A DNA stretch of 63,575 nucleotides, counting the filler, from Reticulomyxa filosa (taxonomy: Eukaryota > Protista > Foraminifera), in NCBI GenBank assembly GCA_000512085.1. It is 17 parts of 17 records of this genome, joined end to end, with 100 filler letters (N's around TTAATTAATTAA, not from the genome) between each part and the next. Parts side by side here need not be neighbours in the genome. Positions count along the whole stretch, not along the records: positions 40,828 to 49,438 come from ASPP01010151.1; 16 more parts are not named here. One strand, 5' to 3'. This document shows, piece by piece, positions 38,475-49,438 of this stretch. The position numbers and the translations under genes were made by a program. The notes under the pieces were generated by a model. That model ran no database searches. It had not been told where the DNA came from and was given only the letters and a program-made list of their open reading frames with translations. Positions within the stretch are counted from its first letter, which is position 1. Each line of letters starts with the position of its first letter.

Positions 38475-40945
38475 TATTTCAATATAATCCATGTTTTTTA
38501 ATCAATTGTAAATGACTTGATATTTTTCTTTTTGTGAACAGGTTTGTGATTATTGATTGAATCCTGATCGATCATGGTAGAATATTCTCATCGATATTAA
38601 TTATTGTTTTTTTGTTATTATTTTTGCTTGATTGTGAGTATTTGTGTAACACTTGTATTTTCTACTCATTTTGCCCCACTTTGTAATGTTTTCCAAGATA
38701 CCCTTTTGCATTGTTATTAGTTCATATTGTTTATTAATCATTTTTTTTAGTACAATTGTTTTCTTTGTTTGTTTTTTTTGCTTTAATTGCTGCGCTTGGT
38801 TATTTTATCATTCGTGCTTTGATTAGTCTTGTCCTGCATTGTATACAGACATTTGGTTCATTCATTGAGGTTTTGTGTGATATTGCGTACACGTATGCAG
38901 ACAGCTATGATGCAATGATTTGAATCTCTTGGAGTCGAAATTGCCCGAAATTGCAATTGATCCTGCAAATAAAGTGAGTAAAAAGAGTCTACTGATGTGG
39001 ACATAATCATGGCGACTCCAATACAGGTGGCTTATCTATTGACGCTTGTGCCTTGACATCTCCTTCTATATTGTCTGCGCTTGTTTGGTATTCAAAAAAT
39101 GTACAAGTATTCATTTGATTATGTAGTGTCTTGTCATCCTTGTAATGTGGTCGATATTAATGCTGCTGAAACAACGACAGTCGAATGTGACATCATTCGC
39201 TATCATCAAGTTTGCCATTCATGACAATTTACTTTCTGTTGTATTTTCATTTGGTCCTTCGATCACATTTACAAATGTTTGTTTGTATTATATTTTCAAT
39301 AGTTATGGTATTTGCCTGATTATTTGGCATTCATGCATTTATTATTCCAATATCGAATGGAAATTAAAAAATTTAAAACAAATAATTTGGTTCTAATTTA
39401 TTTGTTTTGAGATTCGTTCTTCGATATTTGAACTTTGTTAAAGTTAAATAATATTTCAATTTTTGGTACAACAAAAAAGTGGCTGTTGTTGAACTATCTT
39501 TTAAAAACTATTATTATTTTAAATGGCACAGAAGAAAGTTTGACTCCACTGGTTGTCAAACTTTAAATCTTTGGAAGTCTTAACAGCGAACAATGGCTTA
39601 ACTAACAAGAGGTTGTTTTTTTTTATGTCAATTCAGTGGTTTCACAATTTGACAAACGAAATGGCCAATTCAATGGATGAAAAAAAAGAAAGGTCAGCAT
39701 AAAGATAATGTCAACAACAATAATTAGAGCCTGTTTGCACTAAGAAAATACAGTCTTTTATATTATATTCAAACAATTTCAACAATATTTTAACATTAAA
39801 AAATACTTTTATGACGTTAAATCAAAAATGCATATACATGTGCAAAAATGTTGAATAAACAATTTGCCAATTATAACAGTTGACAAATTGAGGATATAAA
39901 GAATATCTGAGATTGCTTTACAAATAATCACTAGAGTGAACGAGGATTGTTGGATCACAGCTGCGGATATGTTGTTTTAAGTTTTTTCTATTTCGTCACT
40001 CAATAAATGCTCGCAGCGTATATTCCTTCTGTGCTTGATAGTCAACAAAAGCGATTCGTTAACATTGATACACAATATCTCAAATGGCATTTTTAAACAG
40101 AATGAGGAAAAAAAGGAGACGTATACATCCACATATGTATCCCAGTTTTATCAAATTGCCATTTGATAGCAGTATCGAACAAGCAGTTTCATCTGCATGG
40201 ATTGTAGTTTAATACTTGATGGTGATGCATGATGACGGATACTTAAATGTAAAACAAATAAATAAACAATTCAACGGGAATTCTTTTTGATTGATAGCCG
40301 ATCGTTTCACTTTTAAATTTTTGTTGCCATCACTTTTTGCGTAGAGATTTGTTAAAAGTTGAATAAGGTCTTTTTGGTATGACGTTTTGAAAATTAAAAA
40401 TTGTGTGAAAAAACGATCATTTTATTTTATACAAAGCCCAAATTAATGGAATCGGCCAAAAAAGGCGGAATGCTGTAATTTCACATTGCTTTTTCTAAGT
40501 TGGCAACTCAAGATACTTTGGTTTCGCAACAGGGCATCTTTTTCGTTGTTGCGATTGTATTTATGTTTTATCAGTGGTAATGGTCCAATAATAAAAGAAA
40601 AACAATAGTAAAGCTGTGCTAATGGACTACAGCAAGACAAGACAAGTCGACCGCAGTGAAATTAACACATATGTGAAGTTAATAGCGTGAGTTTTATTTG
40701 ACTGGTTCAAAAAAAAGTAAGTGTGCCNNNNNNNNNNNNNNNNNNNNNNNNNNNNNNNNNNNNNNNNNNNNTTAATTAATTAANNNNNNNNNNNNNNNNN
40801 NNNNNNNNNNNNNNNNNNNNNNNNNNNATTACAACTCTGGAGTCAGTTATGACTCATGTATCACTACAATAGTGTACGATAATAAACGAAAAAAACGAAA
40901 AGCATTCACAAATTTTAAAAGAACTCAAAGCAACGTGTGTATATA

Positions 40946-42010
40946 TTATCCCCACAGCCGAATTGTATTGTCTTGAGAAGATGAAACAAGTAACTTTCCA
41001 TTGGGTGATACATCTATATTAGTAATAGCATCAAAATGGCCTATTAAGCGTTGTGTTGGTTCTCCTGTTGTGAAATTCCACATTTCAATATCTTTAAAGG
41101 ATGAACGAGCAAAGATAATTCGCTTATCTGGTGAGCACTTTGCAAACAGATGGGTATTTGGTGATTGCACTTTTTCCAGTAATTTGTTTTGGGCAATGTC
41201 CCTCGTGACAATGCATTGTTCAGTTGAGAAGGATTCAAGCAATGTTCCATCAGAACAAAATTGAGCAATCCGAATATGTTCACCTGGTCTTTTCATGGAA
41301 ATTATCCTTTCACCAGATGACAGACGAGCCACATGAAGTTCAAAGCAAGTCAAAAAAAGAACATATTCTCCACGGGGTGAAATCTGAAAGCGTAATACTT
41401 CATGGTCCTTAAATACATACAATTGCACCAGTTTTCCAGAATTGATCTCCCACACTCGTAGCGTGTTATCATCTGCACATGCTATAACAGAATTGTCATT
41501 ATGAGAAAAGTGTATGTCGTTTATTTCAGCCGAACAAGATTCGAATTTTCTTGATTTTTTTTCCAGACCCCACATCCCACAATGCAATGGTGCAATCATT
41601 TGAACATGTCACAATGGTATTTCCAGATGACGAGAATTCCGCCCTTGTCACACAATGACCATGACCGACAAAGGTTCGAAGTAACTCGCCCGATTTCACG
41701 TCCCAAATGCACGCTGTTTTGTCATTTGATGCTGACACAAGTTTTGTGCCATCTGGGGAAAATTTCACCCAATTCACTTTGCTTGTATGTCCTATTATTA
41801 TCCTTAATTGTTTCAAATATGGAGTCTGTTTAATTCCAAAAATTTTAATCGAATGTACAATTTCACTGTCATATCGCATTCCAAAAAAAATAAAAAATGA
41901 AATACTTCAGTCTTAACATATTCTGCAATCAATTGATCAAACTCATGAATCCAACCAAATCTCGCTTGTACCTGGCGACGCCACACTCGTAGGAGTATTG
42001 CTAATTCTTC
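40946..42010 (-). CDS. WD40-repeat protein (frameshift in an A-run near 41555, likely a sequencing error)
   Basis: GHTSKVNWVKFSPDGTKLVSASNDKTACIWD, GHGHCVTRAEFS and GHFDAITNIDVSPNGKLLVSSSQDNTIRLWG; the upstream exon reads RFGWIHEFDQLIAEY. Confidence 0.85.
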
Positions 42011-42655
42011 TTCTCTCTTTTTTTTTTTTTTTTTTTTTTTTTTTGAAATTCATTGTTTCCAAAATTGTCTTATTTTTGATCATCATGAACACAAATGTTG
42101 ATAAATAGCTATGCTTAAGGAAAAACGTACAGGAAGATTTCCTGTTCTGTTTTTTCTTATGCGTTTTTTTTTCGTTTTTGGATCTTTTTCATAGCAATTT
42201 CATTACTATCACATTTTGATTCAAATTCCATTTGTAATATTGAGATGAAAGGAAAAGTTTTCTAAGTTAGAGCTTTTTTTTTGAAAGAGTGTTAACGACA
42301 AGTTCAACAAAATATTCCAATTTTATTTCGTACAGCATATACTGGAATATTTAGCATACACCTTTAATTTGGATTCAAATGGAGACACAGATTTGGGAAA
42401 GAATATATATTCCTTTCTTAGCTGCTAACTCAATTTTTAGAATTACGTTGCTGGTAAATTTTTAGAATTTCATCACTCACAACTAAGCAAGTGCTCTTTA
42501 ATATTTTGAATCAGTCAATAATGAAGAAAATTATTTGATGTGCAAGGAGAAGTCATCTGTGAGATTTTCCTTACGGTTGAACGGCCGTTTGGTTTTTCCT
42601 CTTAAAACTTTTTACGAAAGGCTCGATATTATTATCAAGCTCTTAAAAAATTCGA

Positions 42656-43377
42656 ATGTTTCCAGCGAAATTGAGAAGATTCAATCGCAGTGTTCTGAGA
42701 TCTACAATTCCATATCAACATTGTTCCCGCTCTCATGCAAGCACAGTAAAACAGTTCACTGCCAAGCCGTTGAGCCCTTCAATCATCAGTGAAGAAAAAC
42801 GTCGGCAGTATATCCAACAGATTTGGTTGGCAAAAGAGGCAAAAGAAATAACGATTGACGAAATTGCAAAGAAACTGGGTTATACAAATGTTTATACCGC
42901 ACAAATACTAAATTTGCAAGCTCCACTGAACCCGGAAAAAGCATGCGAACTGTGTGAGATTTTAGGTTTTACAATCGACCCCATTTATTCCGAAATTTTG
43001 GAGGAAATGCAAAAAGCACCAAAACGAAGATTTGATCAGCAGATATTACAAGAACCAAATGTTTTGTTTGTTTGTTTTTTTTCTTCTCTTTTTTTTTTTT
43101 TTTTGCATTTTTGTTTAATTAAAAAAAAAAGTAGACATATCGATTGCTGGAAGCAGTACAACATAATGCAGAATCACTGAAGCAAGTTGTAAATGAAAAA
43201 TTTGGTGATGGTATTATGAGTGCCATTGATTTTCATTTGAATGTATCCAAAATCAAAGGCGCACAGGGGGAAGACAGGGTTGTCATCACATTTGATGGAA
43301 AATTTTTACCTTTCATTGAACAGAAAATCGACAACCAAAGAACTGTTGATCAAGAAAATGCACAAAAAAATCAATGA
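42656..43377 (+). CDS. cynS: Cyanate hydratase (cyanase), 2 exons (intron 43061-43134), with an N-terminal extension
   Basis: Spliced: ...[18 protein letters not shown]...QEPN|[10 protein letters not shown]...[15 protein letters not shown]...[14 protein letters not shown]. The catalytic R/E (YRLxE) and S (GDGIMSAI) are present. Confidence 0.95.
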
Positions 43378-43956
43378 GCAATTCTGCTTTTTTTTTTGGC
43401 CCATTTGCTTTGCTTAAACAAACGAGGGAGAGTGAGTTTGGAAATTTGACCATTTTTTTCCCCCACCCTTGCCTATTATTCAAAGAGTTGTTAAAGTAAA
43501 TGAGTTTTGTCTTTTTTTTCTCCCAATGGTTCTAATACAAAGCAAACAGAATTTTTTTTAGCAATTGAATTATTTTTTTTTAATAATTCCTTTGGTTCAC
43601 TAAGGGCTCTCTTTTTATAGTAAAGTTTTAAGAGAACTTTTTTCATTTCTCTCTCCTACCACAACATAGTCTTAAAAAAAAAAACGAACACCAAGTGACC
43701 AACACAGTTTTTTTTTTTATTAAAATTAAAATTCTTAATTAATTACTTATCTAAAAATTTTTATTGGCTGTAACGGCGGAATATGGGGGTCTTCTCTCCT
43801 CTTTTTTTCCTCCATTGAAAGCGTGCGTATGATATTCTACAGATGAACAAAAATGAGAGAAAGGAAATAAAGTTTAAGTTACAAAAGATAATACGATAGA
43901 AGGCTATTTTTGTAGCAGCTTTGTTGTTGTTTTGTATTGGTTTGCAAGAACAGTGC

Positions 43957-45817
43957 TTATAAAATAGCGCATTGACATTTGAAACAATTTTGTCTTGCCT
44001 TGTGGTCGTCCGTCGTTTGGTTGTCATTGTCTTCCTTCGGAACGTCGTACAACAGGGGTCGTTTATCAACGCCAGAGGGCTCTTTTTTGTTGTCTTTGCC
44101 ATACGGTACGCTTTTGTCTGATGTAGTATGCGTAAGAGAGTCCTCGGTTATCGGTTTTGGTAGTGGATCACTAGGAGCGGCCGGATTGAGTTCTGCATTC
44201 GACGTTGTGGCAACAGGAGTGACACTCTCTCGTTTTGTGGATTTGCGTGGCTGTTGAGATTCTTGTAGTTGTTGTTGTGGTTGTTGTGGTTGTTGCTGTT
44301 GTTGCTGCTTCTGCGACGATTCATCAAGTTCTACCACACGCAAAAAAAAAAACAAAAAAAAAAAAACAACCAAGACATTTTGTTTTGTTTTTTTTTAAAA
44401 AAAGAATCACTCTTCTGCACAAACAAACAAACAGTGTTGCTAAAATACGTGAGCTGGGTTGTTTTGTATTGGCAGTAGGAGTGTAAGATGACAGTGCAAT
44501 CGATCTCGTTCTGCTCAAAGTTTCCTCAAAGGGTTTGTTTTTGTCATATGCAACATCAGCATCTTTCTTTTGATTGGAGTTGACATTGGCATTATTGTTA
44601 TGATTGTTGTTAGTGTTATTGATATTGTTATTGTTATTGTTATTGTTATTGTTATTGTTATTGTTATTGTTATTGTTATTGTTATTGTTATTGTTATTGT
44701 TATTGTTATTATTATTATTATTATTGTTATTGATATTGGTATTGCCATTGTTATTATTATTGTTATTAGTATTAGTATTAGTATTGGTCGTGACACTAGG
44801 ATGAGTACTTTTGTAATTGTCATCATCGGTGTCAATAGTAGCAACAACAGCCGAGTAGAAATTAGTGTCGGCAGCAGGAGCAGAAGTGGAGGGCGAAGGC
44901 GAAGGGGAAGAGCCACGATCTGTGGCAGGAGTGGAAACGACGGGACTCGATGTGATTCGAACGGCCGTCGACGTCGCATTGGCGTGTATGTGATCTGCGT
45001 CTGAAGTGACATTGCTTTGGTGTTGGCGATCGACGACGACGATACTTACTTTTTCTTTCTTTTTGTCCACTGCGTTGTGGCCGTGATTATTTTCATTGTC
45101 CTCCTTATCCATCGAAGAAGGATCGTGGTGGTGGTGGTCCGAAGAGGTCACATTATTCTTATTCTCCTTCTTCTTCTTCTCGTCGTTCGATGCTGGCTTC
45201 GCCGCTTTGCTCTTCGTGCTTTTCTCCGTTTCGTTTTTCGTCGCTTTTATTTGGCCTGTGGATATCTCCTCGAAGCAGTCGTTGCATACGCGCTTCTTAT
45301 TTTTTTCTTGATGAAATGTCACCACATGTGGCGAACATTTCCCACATACCACACGTCCGCATTTGCGGCAATGATGCTGGTTATGCATATTATATATCAC
45401 ACATACATTTACTCACTTACTTATATTTCGTGTGTTATATATATATATATATATATATATGCATATATACATATATGTATATGTTTACATATATGCTATA
45501 CGCTTGGAAATTTATTGATCAATTCAGACCATCGCACTTTCTTGTGCCAATGGTGTTGAAAAAAAAAAAAAGGGGGAGATAGAGAGAATTCAAAAAAAAA
45601 AATTAATTAATTAACTCTTCGGTTTTTTCCAATCAATGAAAACTTTGTCTTACAAATCATACATTCGGGGGCTTTTTCATCAGGAACCCAACCCTATTTC
45701 CACAAACCGAGATTTTTTGACAAGTTCGACGGAAATTACACATTAAAACCGAACTGATCCTTTTCTTTTTATTCGATCGGCATCTATATCAGCTTCTGCA
45801 TCTTTAAACGGAAGCAT
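43957..45817 (-). CDS. FYVE zinc-finger protein with low-complexity poly-Asn/poly-Gln region (multi-exon; ends approximate)
   Basis: Spliced WVPDEKAPECMICKTKFSLIGKNRR|HHCRKCGRVVCGKCS...KRVCNDCF contains the FYVE WxxD, RRHHCRxCG and RVC motifs. Confidence 0.85.
44622..44784. repeat. (ATTGTT)n/(ATT)n microsatellite encoding poly-Asn
   Basis: Direct observation. Confidence 0.9.
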
Positions 45818-46243
45818 CTTCCCTAACAGGAAGGATCAATTTACGTTTTAATTTTTTTTTTTAAGTTCACTTTTTTAGCTGAACAAAGCGATTGTTCTTT
45901 GGGTAGTGCACATCAAACTCAAAGTTTATTGCCTATCTAAATAATATATATCACGAAAAAACTTAGGTCACAAATACTAATTTTTATCGATTTAATAAAG
46001 ATGAAAAAACTGGATGGTCAGTAATGGTTACTTTTAGGCGGAACTGATTTTTATTTGAAAATCGGCTTTGCATTTAAAAATTTGAAATGAAAAAATGTAA
46101 TAGTAATTATATATATAACAATGAAATACGAAAATCCGGAACTTCGAAAGCGCGTCCAGTTTTTTTAGTAAGTCTGAAATTGATATTAGTTTGTTTGGAT
46201 TGGGTTGTTCCTGCGAACAGTATAAATCTCAATAAGGGATCAA

Positions 46244-48038
46244 ATGTCTGTTACGTTTTGTAAAGTTAAGTTTTTGCGTTGTCTTTTTTTTGTGCAGTTC
46301 TTCGGAAGAGGAAAGGAAAAAAGAAAAAAATGTGGGAACATAGAGATTATTTGTATTTTGTTTATTTTGAATGCTGTGGTTATTGTTTTGTGATTTTAGA
46401 TGGGTTGCACTATGTCAGTCAACCCCGGGAAGACACCAAATGGAAAACCGTACAACACGTGTTGTCGAGAGTGTGCAGTGGGTTTCGGTATTCACAGTAC
46501 GGAATGTCAAACTCGAAATGGCAGTTGAGTGAGTAAATGTTCCAATTCCGAAAAAAAAAAAAGTTGCATGTTGAAAAAAAATAAAAATAAAAAAAAAAAA
46601 TACGAAATTGTGTAAAGAGACGACAGCAGTGGTAGGAATTCGTGGGGGTACTTCAACGAAGGAATTGAAGAAAAAGAAGAAGAAAAAAGTAGTACGCAAA
46701 AAGGGGTGCGTTTTGAAAGCTTTTCTTTGTACTTGTTCCGGGTGTTGAAACAAGTACATCCCGCACTTGGAATTAGCAAACGAGCTATGGATGTTTTGAA
46801 CACAATTGGTGCGCTGTAGGATTTTACATACATTATACCATTATTGTATATATGCATATATATATATATACATATATGTATATGAATACATTATATAAAT
46901 ATATAATTATGTATGTCAATTTCGTTGGCATGCACTAACAAAACGTGTATACATTTTGGTGAATTTTGTCGGACTTGTTGTTAATCGTGTCATCCAAAAC
47001 AATAATGCCTAAAAGTGTGGGACCTGTTTAACCGAATTGCAAAAGAAGCAAGTGCAATCTTGAGAAGAGAAGACGGGACAACAATCCGGGCAAAGCATGT
47101 ACTGACCGCCACCAAATTGGCCCTCAAAGGGGAACTGGCCAAACATGCCCTTTCTGAAGCCAACAAGGCCATTGCTAAATTCAATGAAGCAGTTTTGTAA
47201 AAACCTTACTATATACATATATATGTACATATATATATATATATATATATATGTTTATATTTATTTATATTTATGTGTTTATATCCCTTTCCTTCTCCTC
47301 TTGAAAGAACAAGTTTCATAATAATAATAATAAAAAAGATGCGTGTACTAAATTTGTTGAATGCAATAGGGAACCGGTTCAAAAACGAAAAGAGCCGGAC
47401 TGGTGTTCTCAATGCCGAAATTTCGAAAATTACTGAAACATGAGCGTTATGCCGAAAAGATTTCTGGTGCTGCCCCTATTGCGATTGCAGCTGTTCTTGA
47501 GTATATTATTTGTGAAGTGTTGGAATTGAGTGGAAACGCCGCGAAAGATAATGCCAAAATCCGAATTATTCCAAGACATGTAAGTAAATTTTTTCCCCAC
47601 CACATTGATAACTTTTATCTCTTGCACTTTTGCTGTTTGAAAAAAAAAAAAAAAAAAAAAAGATAAGATTGATCAAACTCCAAACTTTGTTTTGGATATG
47701 TATGTATTGTATTACAACAAAAAAAGCTACATCTTGCGATAGCAAATGATGACGAACTTGTACAACTGCTTGGAGGGCCCAGACGAGTGATCCCTCAGGC
47801 AGGTGTTTTACCGTGTATTCATCCCTCGTTAATTCCTGTTCAAGGGAAAAAATCCCTGATGGTAGTTCTGGTTTTTCATTTACTGGTCCTTCATCTTCAG
47901 GTTGGTCTTTTGCAACAACCACTGACCCTTCAGCTCCTCCGGACACTACTACCACTGCTGTTACTACTGACACTACGGCCGCTAGTGTTGCTTTTTAATC
48001 GCTGTGGTCTTGTCAATAAACGAAAACGACAGTCGTAG
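46244..48038 (+). CDS. Cys/His-rich domain + histone H2B + histone H2A fusion (histone doublet), paralog 1; exons 46244-46264, 46400-46523, 46620-46808, 47016-47191, 47370-47579, 47727-end
   Basis: H2B: ESFSLYLFRVLKQVHPALGISKRAMDVLNTI|VWDLFNRIAKEAS...GELAKHALSEANKAIAKF. H2A: KRAGLVFSMPKFRKLLK..YAEKISGAAPIAIAAVLEYIICEVLELSGNAAKDN..RIIPRH|LHLAIANDDEL...QAGVLPCIH. All junctions are GT-AG and in phase. Confidence 0.8.
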
Positions 48039-48800
48039 TCAATACTGTCGAATTTATGACGTTTTGGAGTGCCTTTTTTTTTTTGTCATTATAATGTGGC
48101 CAAAGGTCGTCAATATTTATTGCTTTTCTTCCAACTCTTTTCACAATATCTTCAGTAAGGGTCTGCATTTACATAAAATTCGACCACATTAATATCTTAA
48201 TGTGTGCGTGTATGTTTCTTTTTGTTTTGTTTTTTTTTATTTTTCCTTCTTCCCTTGTTTACTTCTTCGCCACAAGAAATGTTTGAATAAATAAGAAATA
48301 AGCTGAAAAAATTTTTGAAAAACAAATTTCGGATTCTTGCAAAAAATAAATTATGTCCATCTCAATGTGGTGATATTGTGCTTTTGTTCGTAGTTGAGGT
48401 TAACATTTTTTTTGTGTAACTGGCATTGTACTTACTATAATCAAATCTTTTCAGAGCTTATTTTGTCTCAAGATATAACAGCAGAAAACAAAAACATCAA
48501 ATCGTAGTGTTTACACTGATAGACGCTTATGGCGTTGTAAACGAGACATTTTTAAACAAAAAAATGGTGCAATAATGTACCTACTGACAGTTATATAGCT
48601 TATACTAAATGAATTAATTATTATATTGGAAAAATTAATTATCTTGGCGGCTTGTCGCTTTAAAACAACTTAACATTCGAGAGAAGGGGAAGTGGAAAAA
48701 GAACATTTTTTCATGTTTGATAATTGTTAATCTCATTTATATTATTTATTTATTTTTGCTTATTTTGTTGTACGTCATTAAGAATAAACACTACGAGAGA

Positions 48801-49438
48801 ATGTCTACAGCCGTCCTTTGCAAAGTGTGTCTTAGTTTGTCCCCATGTCTTTCCAACACTAAACATTTTAGCATGCAAAAAAAAATAGCATTTAAAAAAA
48901 CGGACTATTACATTGTTATTGGGTGATGTGGACAAAAAAAAAAATGTATTTTTTTGAGATGGGATGCAACATGTTGGTAAATCCGGAACAAGACTCAAAA
49001 GAGCCTAATAATGAAGCATGCTGCAATGAATGTGCGTCAGGTTCAATTCATCACAGTGAAGAATGTCAATCTCGAAACACCAATAGTTTTTTTTTTTTTT
49101 TTTTCCTCTCCCTCCCCAATCACGTCCTACACGTATAGTAATAATGATTTACAATGACATTGGGTAATGATCAATAAAAAAATAAAACAATGAAACTTTA
49201 TAGAAGAAAAAGCGCCACAGAACTTTGTAGGAACAGAAGAGGAAAAGAACGGGAACAAGAACGGAGCAAAAAAAATACGAAAAAAGAAAAAAGGTAAAAC
49301 CCAACAAAACCCCCGCAATACCCGTGGCGAAAGGGTTGCATTTGAAAGATTTGAACGTTACACGGCGCGTGTATTAAAACAAGTCCATCCCCGTTTGTCC
49401 ATGACACTTCGCTGTGCGGCTGTTATGAATACTATTGG
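48801..49438 (+). CDS. Cys/His-rich domain + H2B-like histone, paralog 2 (truncated at contig end); exons 48801-48824, 48959-49085, 49204-49437
   Basis: MSTAVLCK|MGCNMLVNP...CCNECASGSIHHSEEC..|...FERFERYTARVLKQVHPRLSMTLRCAAVMNTI. Intron positions and phases match paralog 1. Confidence 0.8.

Follow-up and report, generated by a model that had tools for sequence, protein, structure and literature searches.

The DNA analysed here, which we call the window, is a joined stretch of 63,575 nucleotides (nt), filler included, from the foraminiferan Reticulomyxa filosa. The locus in question lies on genomic contig ASPP01010151.1 of assembly GCA_000512085.1 (window positions 40828-49438, 8611 nt), where an H2B histone fold is followed on the same strand by an H2A fold. 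We consider it likely that both folds belong to one spliced gene of five exons (46400-47998, + strand) encoding a Cys/His-H2B-H2A doublet, that is, a single chain in which an N-terminal Cys/His module precedes H2B and H2A. The gene model, in window positions, reads as follows.

46400 to 46523, + strand: exon 1, the MGC...CC-x2-C-x6-H-x3-C module (41 codons plus 1 nt; MGCTMSVNPGKTPNGKPYNTCCRECAVGFGIHSTECQTRNG), with the probable start codon at 46400.
46524 to 46619, + strand: intron 1, 96 nt, GTTGAG...GAG; the phase-1 join keeps the frame, and the acceptor may also lie 2 nt further 5'.
46620 to 46808, + strand: exon 2, an acidic/basic low-complexity tail, then H2B from alpha1 to half-way through alpha2 (...FSLYLFRVLKQVHPALGISKRAMDVLNTI).
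46809 to 47015, + strand: intron 2, 207 nt, GT..AG, holding a TA/TG microsatellite.
47016 to 47191, + strand: exon 3, H2B from alpha2 to alphaC (VWDLFNRIAKEAS...KGELAKHALSEANKAIAKFNEA).
47192 to 47369, + strand: putative intron 3, 178 nt, GTTTTG...ATAG, G+C fraction 0.20.
47370 to 47579, + strand: exon 4, H2A from 7 residues before RAGL to ...IIPRH, alphaN to the start of alpha3 (GTGSKTKRAGLVF, GTGSKTKRAGLVFSMPKF).
47580 to 47726, + strand: intron 4, 147 nt, GTAAGT...AAAG.
47727 to 47998, + strand: exon 5, encoding alpha3, alphaC and the docking segment of H2A (LHLAIANDDELVQLL...GVLPCIHPSLIPVQGK) and, after them, the G/S/T-rich tail; stop codon at 47996-98.
48015 to 48020, + strand: AATAAA, a candidate poly(A) signal from a pattern scan, 17 nt past the stop at 47996-98.

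The two folds are real and stand in the order H2B then H2A, as an earlier sequence-only reading of this DNA had proposed and as Pfam, PDB matches and alignments of the separate exons all bear out. With the exons run one by one, exon 2 scored 27.1 bits for Pfam Histone (cut-off 26.4 bits) and exon 5 scored 26.1 bits for Histone_H2A_C (cut-off 20 bits); exon 4 alone reached 23.5 bits for Histone, below the cut-off, and matched canonical H2A chains in PDB at E 1.4e-19 (phmmer). Exons 2 and 3 align without gaps to the H2B of doublets and of a human single-chain construct, and they carry the H2B motifs VLKQVHP and GELAKHA-x-SE together with the alphaC helix. The H2A part aligns gap-free to human H2A, keeps LEY, EVLE and NDDEL, and has the RAGL-x-F alphaN motif, the L1/L2 arginines and the C-terminal docking segment. 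Among the retained positions are those of the acidic patch (the E of LEY, the two E of EVLE and the DDE of NDDEL in H2A; GE and SE in H2B) and the arginines of RAGL and IIPRH. The C-terminus reads ...TAASVAF or, in another frame, ...NKRKRQS, and neither ending is the SQ(E/D)-hydrophobic motif of H2A.X.

At the boundary between the folds, H2B ends ...AKFNEA at 47191 and is followed by GT at 47192-93; read without splicing, it continues ...EAVL and terminates at TAA 47198-47200. The H2A exon, reading GTGSKTKRAGLVF...IIPRH, begins at 47370 behind an AG at 47368-69 and joins 47191 in phase 0. Directly upstream of it, and overlapping the AG, codon 47367-69 is an in-frame TAG, while the first in-frame ATG of the H2A frame, at 47412, lies downstream of RAGL (RAGLVFS). 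Donor, acceptor, phase, upstream stop, late ATG and the EAVL ending at 47200 had all been called from the sequence alone, and translation confirmed each of them. Because a stop stands directly 5' and no ATG occurs until after RAGLVFS, yet S-K-T-K-RAGL-x-F is conserved, the H2A fold needs an upstream coding exon, and this part of the earlier argument stands as well.

The gap between the folds also has the appearance of an intron of this genome. Its ends, GTTTTG...ATAG, fit the pattern of ASPP01010151.1, where donors read GTTGAG, GTTTGT (in the cyanase gene), GTTGTT (in the FYVE gene) and GTTTTT (in a paralogue) and acceptors are mostly TAG or AAG, GTAG among them. Introns seen on this genomic contig measure 40-207 nt. 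The gap measures 178 nt with a G+C fraction of 0.20, and the three introns of the gene that have support from assembled contigs measure 96, 207 and 147 nt with fractions of 0.23-0.27; the distance to the next paralogue, by comparison, is ~960 nt. R. filosa introns average 87 nt, against a median of 426 nt for the distance between genes (PMC13746701).

Joining exons 3 and 4 places exactly 10 residues between the K[YF] of H2B and the RAGL of H2A (KF-NEAGTGSKTK-RAGL). Five natural single-ORF H2B-H2A doublets, in which one open reading frame (ORF) encodes both histones, also have exactly 10 (P0269, P0270, P0292, P0293 and P0306), on the pattern [NS]xxxxG[SQ][KR][ST]x, and exons 3 and 4 tile such doublets without gap or overlap. 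Engineered single chains in PDB have 11 residues from KY to RAGL, and because these single-chain constructs have been solved, the connector can be taken as sterically sufficient. The G/S/T-rich tail (...GSSGFSFTGPSSSGWSF...AASVAF) likewise resembles the G/S/F-rich tails, ending in Y or F, of many doublets. The comparison profile consisted of the ORF of an H2B-H2A-H3 triplet and the R. filosa exons as separate rows. It brought up numerous single-ORF H2B-H2A doublets, drawn from transcriptomes, metatranscriptomes, metagenomes and Logan assemblies, as well as engineered PDB chains and obvious mis-annotations; among the many doublets it found, none was close to the R. filosa sequence.

Near-canonical H2B-H2A doublets have been described by Irwin & Richards 2024 (PMC11222145) and Talbert et al. 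2022 (PMC9145170). Those from Nucleocytoviricota metagenome-assembled genomes (MAGs) and from (meta)transcriptomes of oceans or cultures (the five named above, and L006 and L007 of GVMAG-S-1096103-95) have the same order of H2B then H2A. They share with R. filosa an H2A N-tail that is almost deleted, the 10-residue spacing with its G-S-K-[ST] pattern, a G/S/F-rich C-terminal tail with an aromatic end, and an intact acidic patch. They are, however, unbroken ORFs, several of them on virus-like contigs, whereas the R. filosa gene has four host-type introns, the third putative, on a cellular contig and carries an N-terminal Cys/His module that they lack. Many of them end in SQ(E/D)-aromatic, which R. 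filosa does not, and they show no specific kinship to it in identity or in a tree. The engineered H2B-H2A and H2B-H2A.Z chains (PDB constructs P0275, P0286 and P0288; PMC12993189) set the C-terminus of H2B straight onto a truncated H2A N-terminus, and a connector of this length (11 residues, against 10 in R. filosa) permits a normal handshake; unlike the R. filosa product, they are artificial, canonical in sequence and free of extra domains.

Several other architectures appeared beside these doublets. P0312 and P0330, two H2B-H2A doublets among JGI metatranscriptome proteins, have ends of SQEY type (H2A.X-like) and carry at the N-terminus a pair of repeats that by eye resemble SAP, so N-terminal additions of other kinds are found on doublets too. 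An MMETSP-derived transcript from a culture (P0259; L005:17-925) holds a complete ORF of 302 residues with H2B, a partial duplication of H2B alpha3-alphaC and an H2A.Z-like fold. Metagenome contig SDBT01147318.1 (L001:1448-3141) contains an unbroken H2B-H2A-H3 ORF of 378 residues and, beside it, a divergently oriented H4 gene of 157 residues with a long basic tail; this contig looks like a giant-virus-type histone triplet plus singlet.

Part of the stretch was present, as assembled contigs, in only one public run, which we guess to be RNA. Five of these contigs aligned to the window at 90-97% identity, and because none is at least 99% identical to it we regard them as paralogues, alleles or another strain. 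Contig record 1 aligns at 46478-46523 and 46698-46808, with ~84 nt between the two segments where the window has 174 nt. Its exon-1 match ends exactly at 46523, and its loose end is the exon 3 start of a more divergent copy, which shows the same intron-2 join in a second copy. Since the aligner skipped the repeat at 46568-46696, the acceptor of intron 1 is placed approximately. Contig record 2 has a joint at 46807/47015 (cut +1) that skips 207 nt bounded by GT..AG; it covers exon 3 and stops 2 nt past 47192, a stop position that carries no firm meaning. A third joint, at 47579/47727 in contig record 3, skips 147 nt, again bounded by GT..AG.

Introns 1, 2 and 4 are missing from these contigs, and exons 1-2-3 and exons 4-5 are joined. 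The earlier description of an intron-rich gene is supported for introns 1, 2 and 4, while intron 3 falls where the contigs give no coverage. That the exons are joined in intron-less contigs 90-97% identical to the window implies that the family is spliced and probably expressed, and the joining of the Cys/His exon to H2B within a contig implies that it belongs to the H2B transcript. Should the run be DNA, however, the contigs would represent intron-less gene copies and not messenger RNA (mRNA). In exon 2, seven of the eight differences from a related transcript-like contig are synonymous third-position changes, a mark of purifying selection.

The 5' end of the gene lies at ATG 46400 and not at 46244, where the sequence-only reading had begun it. 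DNA similarity to a downstream paralogue starts exactly at this ATG, and the ORF at 46244 is unrelated, comprising 49 codons and stopping at 46393. The paralogue follows in tandem.

48959 to 49438, + strand: tandem paralogue, cut by the end of the contig; exon 1 at 48959-49085 (MGC...CCxEC...H...EC), intron at 49086-49230, exon 2 from 49231.

Exon 2 of this paralogue encodes a basic tail and then H2B (...RVLKQVHPRLS...NTI), and the histone gene is one member of a small multi-copy family arranged in tandem. The two first exons are 49% identical at the protein level, with M1, G2, C3, C21, C22, C25, H32 and C36 invariant, and the DNA flanking exon 1 is not conserved between the two copies. Invariant residues within unconserved flanks suggest that the module is a constrained, CCHC-like C-x2-C-x6-H-x3-C metal-binding knuckle. 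The module gave no Pfam match at E up to 1 and no usable Atlas match; in PDB it matched PRDM9 C2H2 finger arrays weakly (GKPY..C..C..F, E 0.0026), with no stretch passing alone, and its AlphaFold2 model, at a predicted local distance difference test (pLDDT) score of 54, was unusable and discarded. Both paralogues start MGC(T/N)M(S/L) (46400-46417 and 48959-48976) and have AG directly before the ATG, and an upstream non-coding exon is possible in both. The start MGCTMS resembles MGCTLS, the motif for dual acylation (N-myristoylation plus palmitoylation) in G-alpha-i, and such a motif would be odd for a histone.

The reading frame of this copy raises two questions, one in exon 5 and one in exon 2. 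After ...LIPVQGKK, the H2A frame as assembled enters a Leu-rich stretch of 60 residues ending at 48038, the end assigned by the sequence-only reading. Another frame yields the G/S/T-rich tail with its stop at 47996-98 and the AATAAA beyond. In contig record 5, 2 nt are absent at ~47840; their loss connects the H2A frame with the frame of the G/S/T-rich tail and moves the likely end of the gene to 47998. The frame change in the window lies near an A6 run at 47847-52, where one more A would have the same effect as the 2-nt loss; substitution patterns in the tail favour neither frame. The Leu-rich frame (47853-48038) could pass for two membrane helices and is open as long as the G/S/T-rich one, and we think that it is out of frame. 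An assembly error seems to us quite probable as the cause of the exon 5 break, more so than a true frameshift or a genuine Leu-rich tail, given the frame link in contig record 5, the effect of one added A, and a second homopolymer frame break in the WD40 gene on the same genomic contig. Read straightforwardly, exon 2 encodes an acidic tail (IEEKEEEK). A second frame, at 46618-46710, encodes a typical basic, K-rich H2B tail (KELKKKKKKKVVRKKG); its use would call for an acceptor 2 nt earlier (46617) and a 1-nt homopolymer error near 46700.

A number of observations weigh against a single spliced chain. Contig coverage leaves 47193-47434 empty, and the H2B-to-H2A junction 47191/47370 is seen in no read or contig; no aligned contig reaches 99% identity to the window, and the RNA status of the run is a guess. 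Without splicing, H2B (KF plus NEAVL, then stop) has a perfectly normal length, and the gap holds both an AATAAA at 47329 and several ATG...GT pairs usable as a separate H2A first exon. Exon 5 of the window copy has a frame break as assembled, the collections searched hold no annotated or transcript-derived protein of this family, and the eukaryotic 'fusions' examined so far in the literature are mis-annotations (PMC9145170). The main rival explanation is two adjacent genes, which we judge unlikely: a Cys/His-H2B gene ending at TAA 47198-47200 and polyadenylated after AATAAA 47329, and an H2A gene with a tiny first exon in the gap. The stop two codons past the donor would then simply be a normal H2B C-terminus, six in-frame ATG...GT options are available in the gap (for example MFIFIYIY with a 95-nt intron), and eukaryotic histone genes are often adjacent. 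Predicted animal and plant 'fusions', many of which occur among our matches, join adjacent H2B and H2A genes by a predicted intron just as here; in the published ones, however, each histone keeps its own start and stop (PMC9145170), whereas the R. filosa H2A has no usable start and an N-tail of 7 residues. We dropped the short N-tail as an argument against a stand-alone gene, since predicted H2As with 5-residue tails exist. Among the candidate first exons, ATGCGT at 47339-44 would require a 25-nt intron, shorter than any on the genomic contig, and the remaining, microsatellite-derived options (such as ATG 47251...GT 47275) prepend junk peptides, for example MYIYIYIY. The promoter of a separate H2A gene would need to fit in ~140 nt of TA microsatellite overlapping the 3' end of H2B, and the exact match of the 10-residue connector to real doublets would be a coincidence. 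One mRNA and ORF with both folds is favoured by the phase-0 GT/AG boundaries, the lack of an H2A start codon and the connector match, and retention of the intron could possibly yield an H2B-only isoform in addition.

Less probable again is a proposal compatible with the other readings, namely that this copy is a decaying or non-expressed paralogue in which the exon 5 frameshift is real, with the doublet layout possibly still valid for the family. It would account for the fact that every aligned contig is below 99% identity to the window, for an H2A frame that runs into a nonsense-like Leu-rich tail unless it shifts near 47847-52, and for an H2B N-tail that is acidic in the straightforward frame and typically K-rich in another. 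Yet seven of eight exon-2 differences are synonymous, the splice sites are all intact, as are the two folds, the frame of the tail runs without a stop over 50 codons and is followed by AATAAA, and the second homopolymer frame break, in the WD40 gene, points to assembly errors and not to decay. A viral origin seems to us the most remote of the alternatives, and very unlikely: an integrated giant-virus doublet to which host-type introns and the N-terminal module were added later. Near-canonical doublets that match in connector length and have similar tails do occur in giant-virus MAGs and on virus-like contigs, some of the retrieved doublets are viral (relatives lie in the giant-virus MAG of L006 and L007 and on a dense, ORFan-rich contig of 41 kb), and the literature attributes histone repeats and doublets in metatranscriptomes to Nucleocytoviricota (PMC11222145). 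The H2A part, however, is no closer to doublets (47-57% identity) than to canonical eukaryotic H2A singlets (54-60%, in a library of 1.84 billion proteins), and identity to triplets is 43-45%. A quick maximum-likelihood tree built from 75 H2A domains puts R. filosa in an unresolved polytomy, at the end of a long branch (1.13 changes per site) and outside two moderately supported doublet clades. The gene has four host-type introns, three of them supported by contigs, on a host contig with host neighbours, unlike an intron-less gene in a Nucleocytoviricota genome, and its stop right after the donor is as expected of a spacer turned intron. A host-side fusion fits this stop codon just inside the intron, with an old viral source as a possibility beside it.

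With single exons as queries, the protein collections returned no family member and only canonical H2A at up to 60% identity; the top 'two-stretch' matches proved to be tandem H2A mis-predictions and were rejected. Exact-product look-ups of two window ORFs found no record, the H2A exon had no relative in a scan of IMG/VR, and a metagenome scan with the H2B exon gave a single match, the H2B-H2A-H3 triplet contig. Identities, tree and IMG/VR thus gave no indication of closer kinship to viral doublets than to eukaryotic histones, in comparisons drawn with the retrieved doublets and triplets and not directly with a Marseilleviridae sequence. The sequence-only reading had offered, as one of two options, a domesticated viral-style doublet of Marseilleviridae type, and we saw no sign of one in the identities, the tree or the host neighbours; the phylogeny that it had called for, run on H2A, placed the gene on its long branch and not within the doublet clades. 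The Marseilleviridae doublet (Melbournevirus; Liu et al. 2021, PMC8357426; Erives 2017, PMC5704553) is a single chain with H2B before H2A, as proposed here, and forms the H2A-H2B-like half of a nucleosome-like particle. Marseilleviridae doublets are viral, intron-less (PMC9145170) and remote from eukaryotic histones; the R. filosa gene lies in a host genome and is 54-60% identical to canonical H2A.

The neighbours of the histone locus are ordinary host genes bearing introns. Three genes are annotated publicly on ASPP01010151.1, encoding a WD40 protein, cyanate lyase (RFI_14020) and a FYVE-type protein of 463 residues, and the annotation holds no gene between contig positions ~5570 and 8611; the histone family is absent from protein collections because its locus is unannotated. 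The annotated WD40 gene (contig positions 119-1052, - strand, 304 residues) includes a 19-nt 'intron'. Splice sites do not fix the position of this 'intron', and nearly any place within the 100 nt over which two ORFs overlap (window 41520-41630, - strand) would serve; it has the look of a bridge across an assembly frameshift at a homopolymer (A8). The FYVE-type zinc-finger protein (window 44324-45400, - strand) contains an unbroken run of ~45 Asn, and the poly-Ile, poly-Val and poly-Leu ORFs on the opposite strand and in other frames of this region are low-complexity artefacts. An Rfam scan of the histone locus returned nothing beyond a sub-threshold mir-297 match (28.9 bits against 90; window 46845-46900, - strand), which falls on the TA/TG microsatellite of intron 2 and is probably due to chance.

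If the five-exon doublet gene is as we propose, 47192-47369 would be removed from the mRNA as an ordinary GT-AG intron, and the product would comprise ~323 residues: the Cys/His (CCHC-like) module, a low-complexity tail, a complete H2B fold, the 10-residue connector, a complete H2A fold with its docking segment, and the G/S/T-rich tail. The H2B and H2A folds would then pair within the chain in a normal H2A-H2B handshake, as in viral doublets and engineered H2B-H2A, and this variant H2A-H2B dimer would be built into nucleosomes, docking on H3-H4; both steps are expected because acidic-patch residues, DNA-contacting arginines and the docking segment are retained. A single chain would fix 1:1 stoichiometry and possibly alter dimer exchange, and the N-terminal module may add a targeting or a nucleic-acid/Zn-binding function. 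The fusion plausibly goes back to neighbouring H2B and H2A genes whose spacer turned into an intron, and an origin of this kind would explain the stop two codons after the donor. For the family as a whole we lean, somewhat beyond an even chance, towards the view that R. filosa expresses through splicing a tandem family of single-chain H2B-H2A doublets, each with an N-terminal Cys/His module bearing a possible acylation motif, that originated by spacer-to-intron conversion and independently of viral doublets.

Eukaryotes as a rule lack fused core histones (PMC10919886), and fused core histones are unconfirmed in them (Talbert et al., PMC9145170). If confirmed, the R. filosa gene would be the first core-histone doublet of a cellular eukaryote, an architecture for which confirmation has otherwise come from giant viruses and archaea alone. 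Current models of nucleosome evolution give histone doublets a central place, as tethered intermediates or as viral 'living fossils'. The present case, if true, would mean that fusion can re-evolve in a modern eukaryote, with the turning of an intergenic spacer into an intron as a concrete route to it, and it would warn against taking every doublet in a transcriptome to be viral. For R. filosa itself, it points to a gene family missing from the annotation, one that would offer a natural system for the effect of a tethered H2A-H2B dimer on histone exchange, chaperone use and variant swapping.

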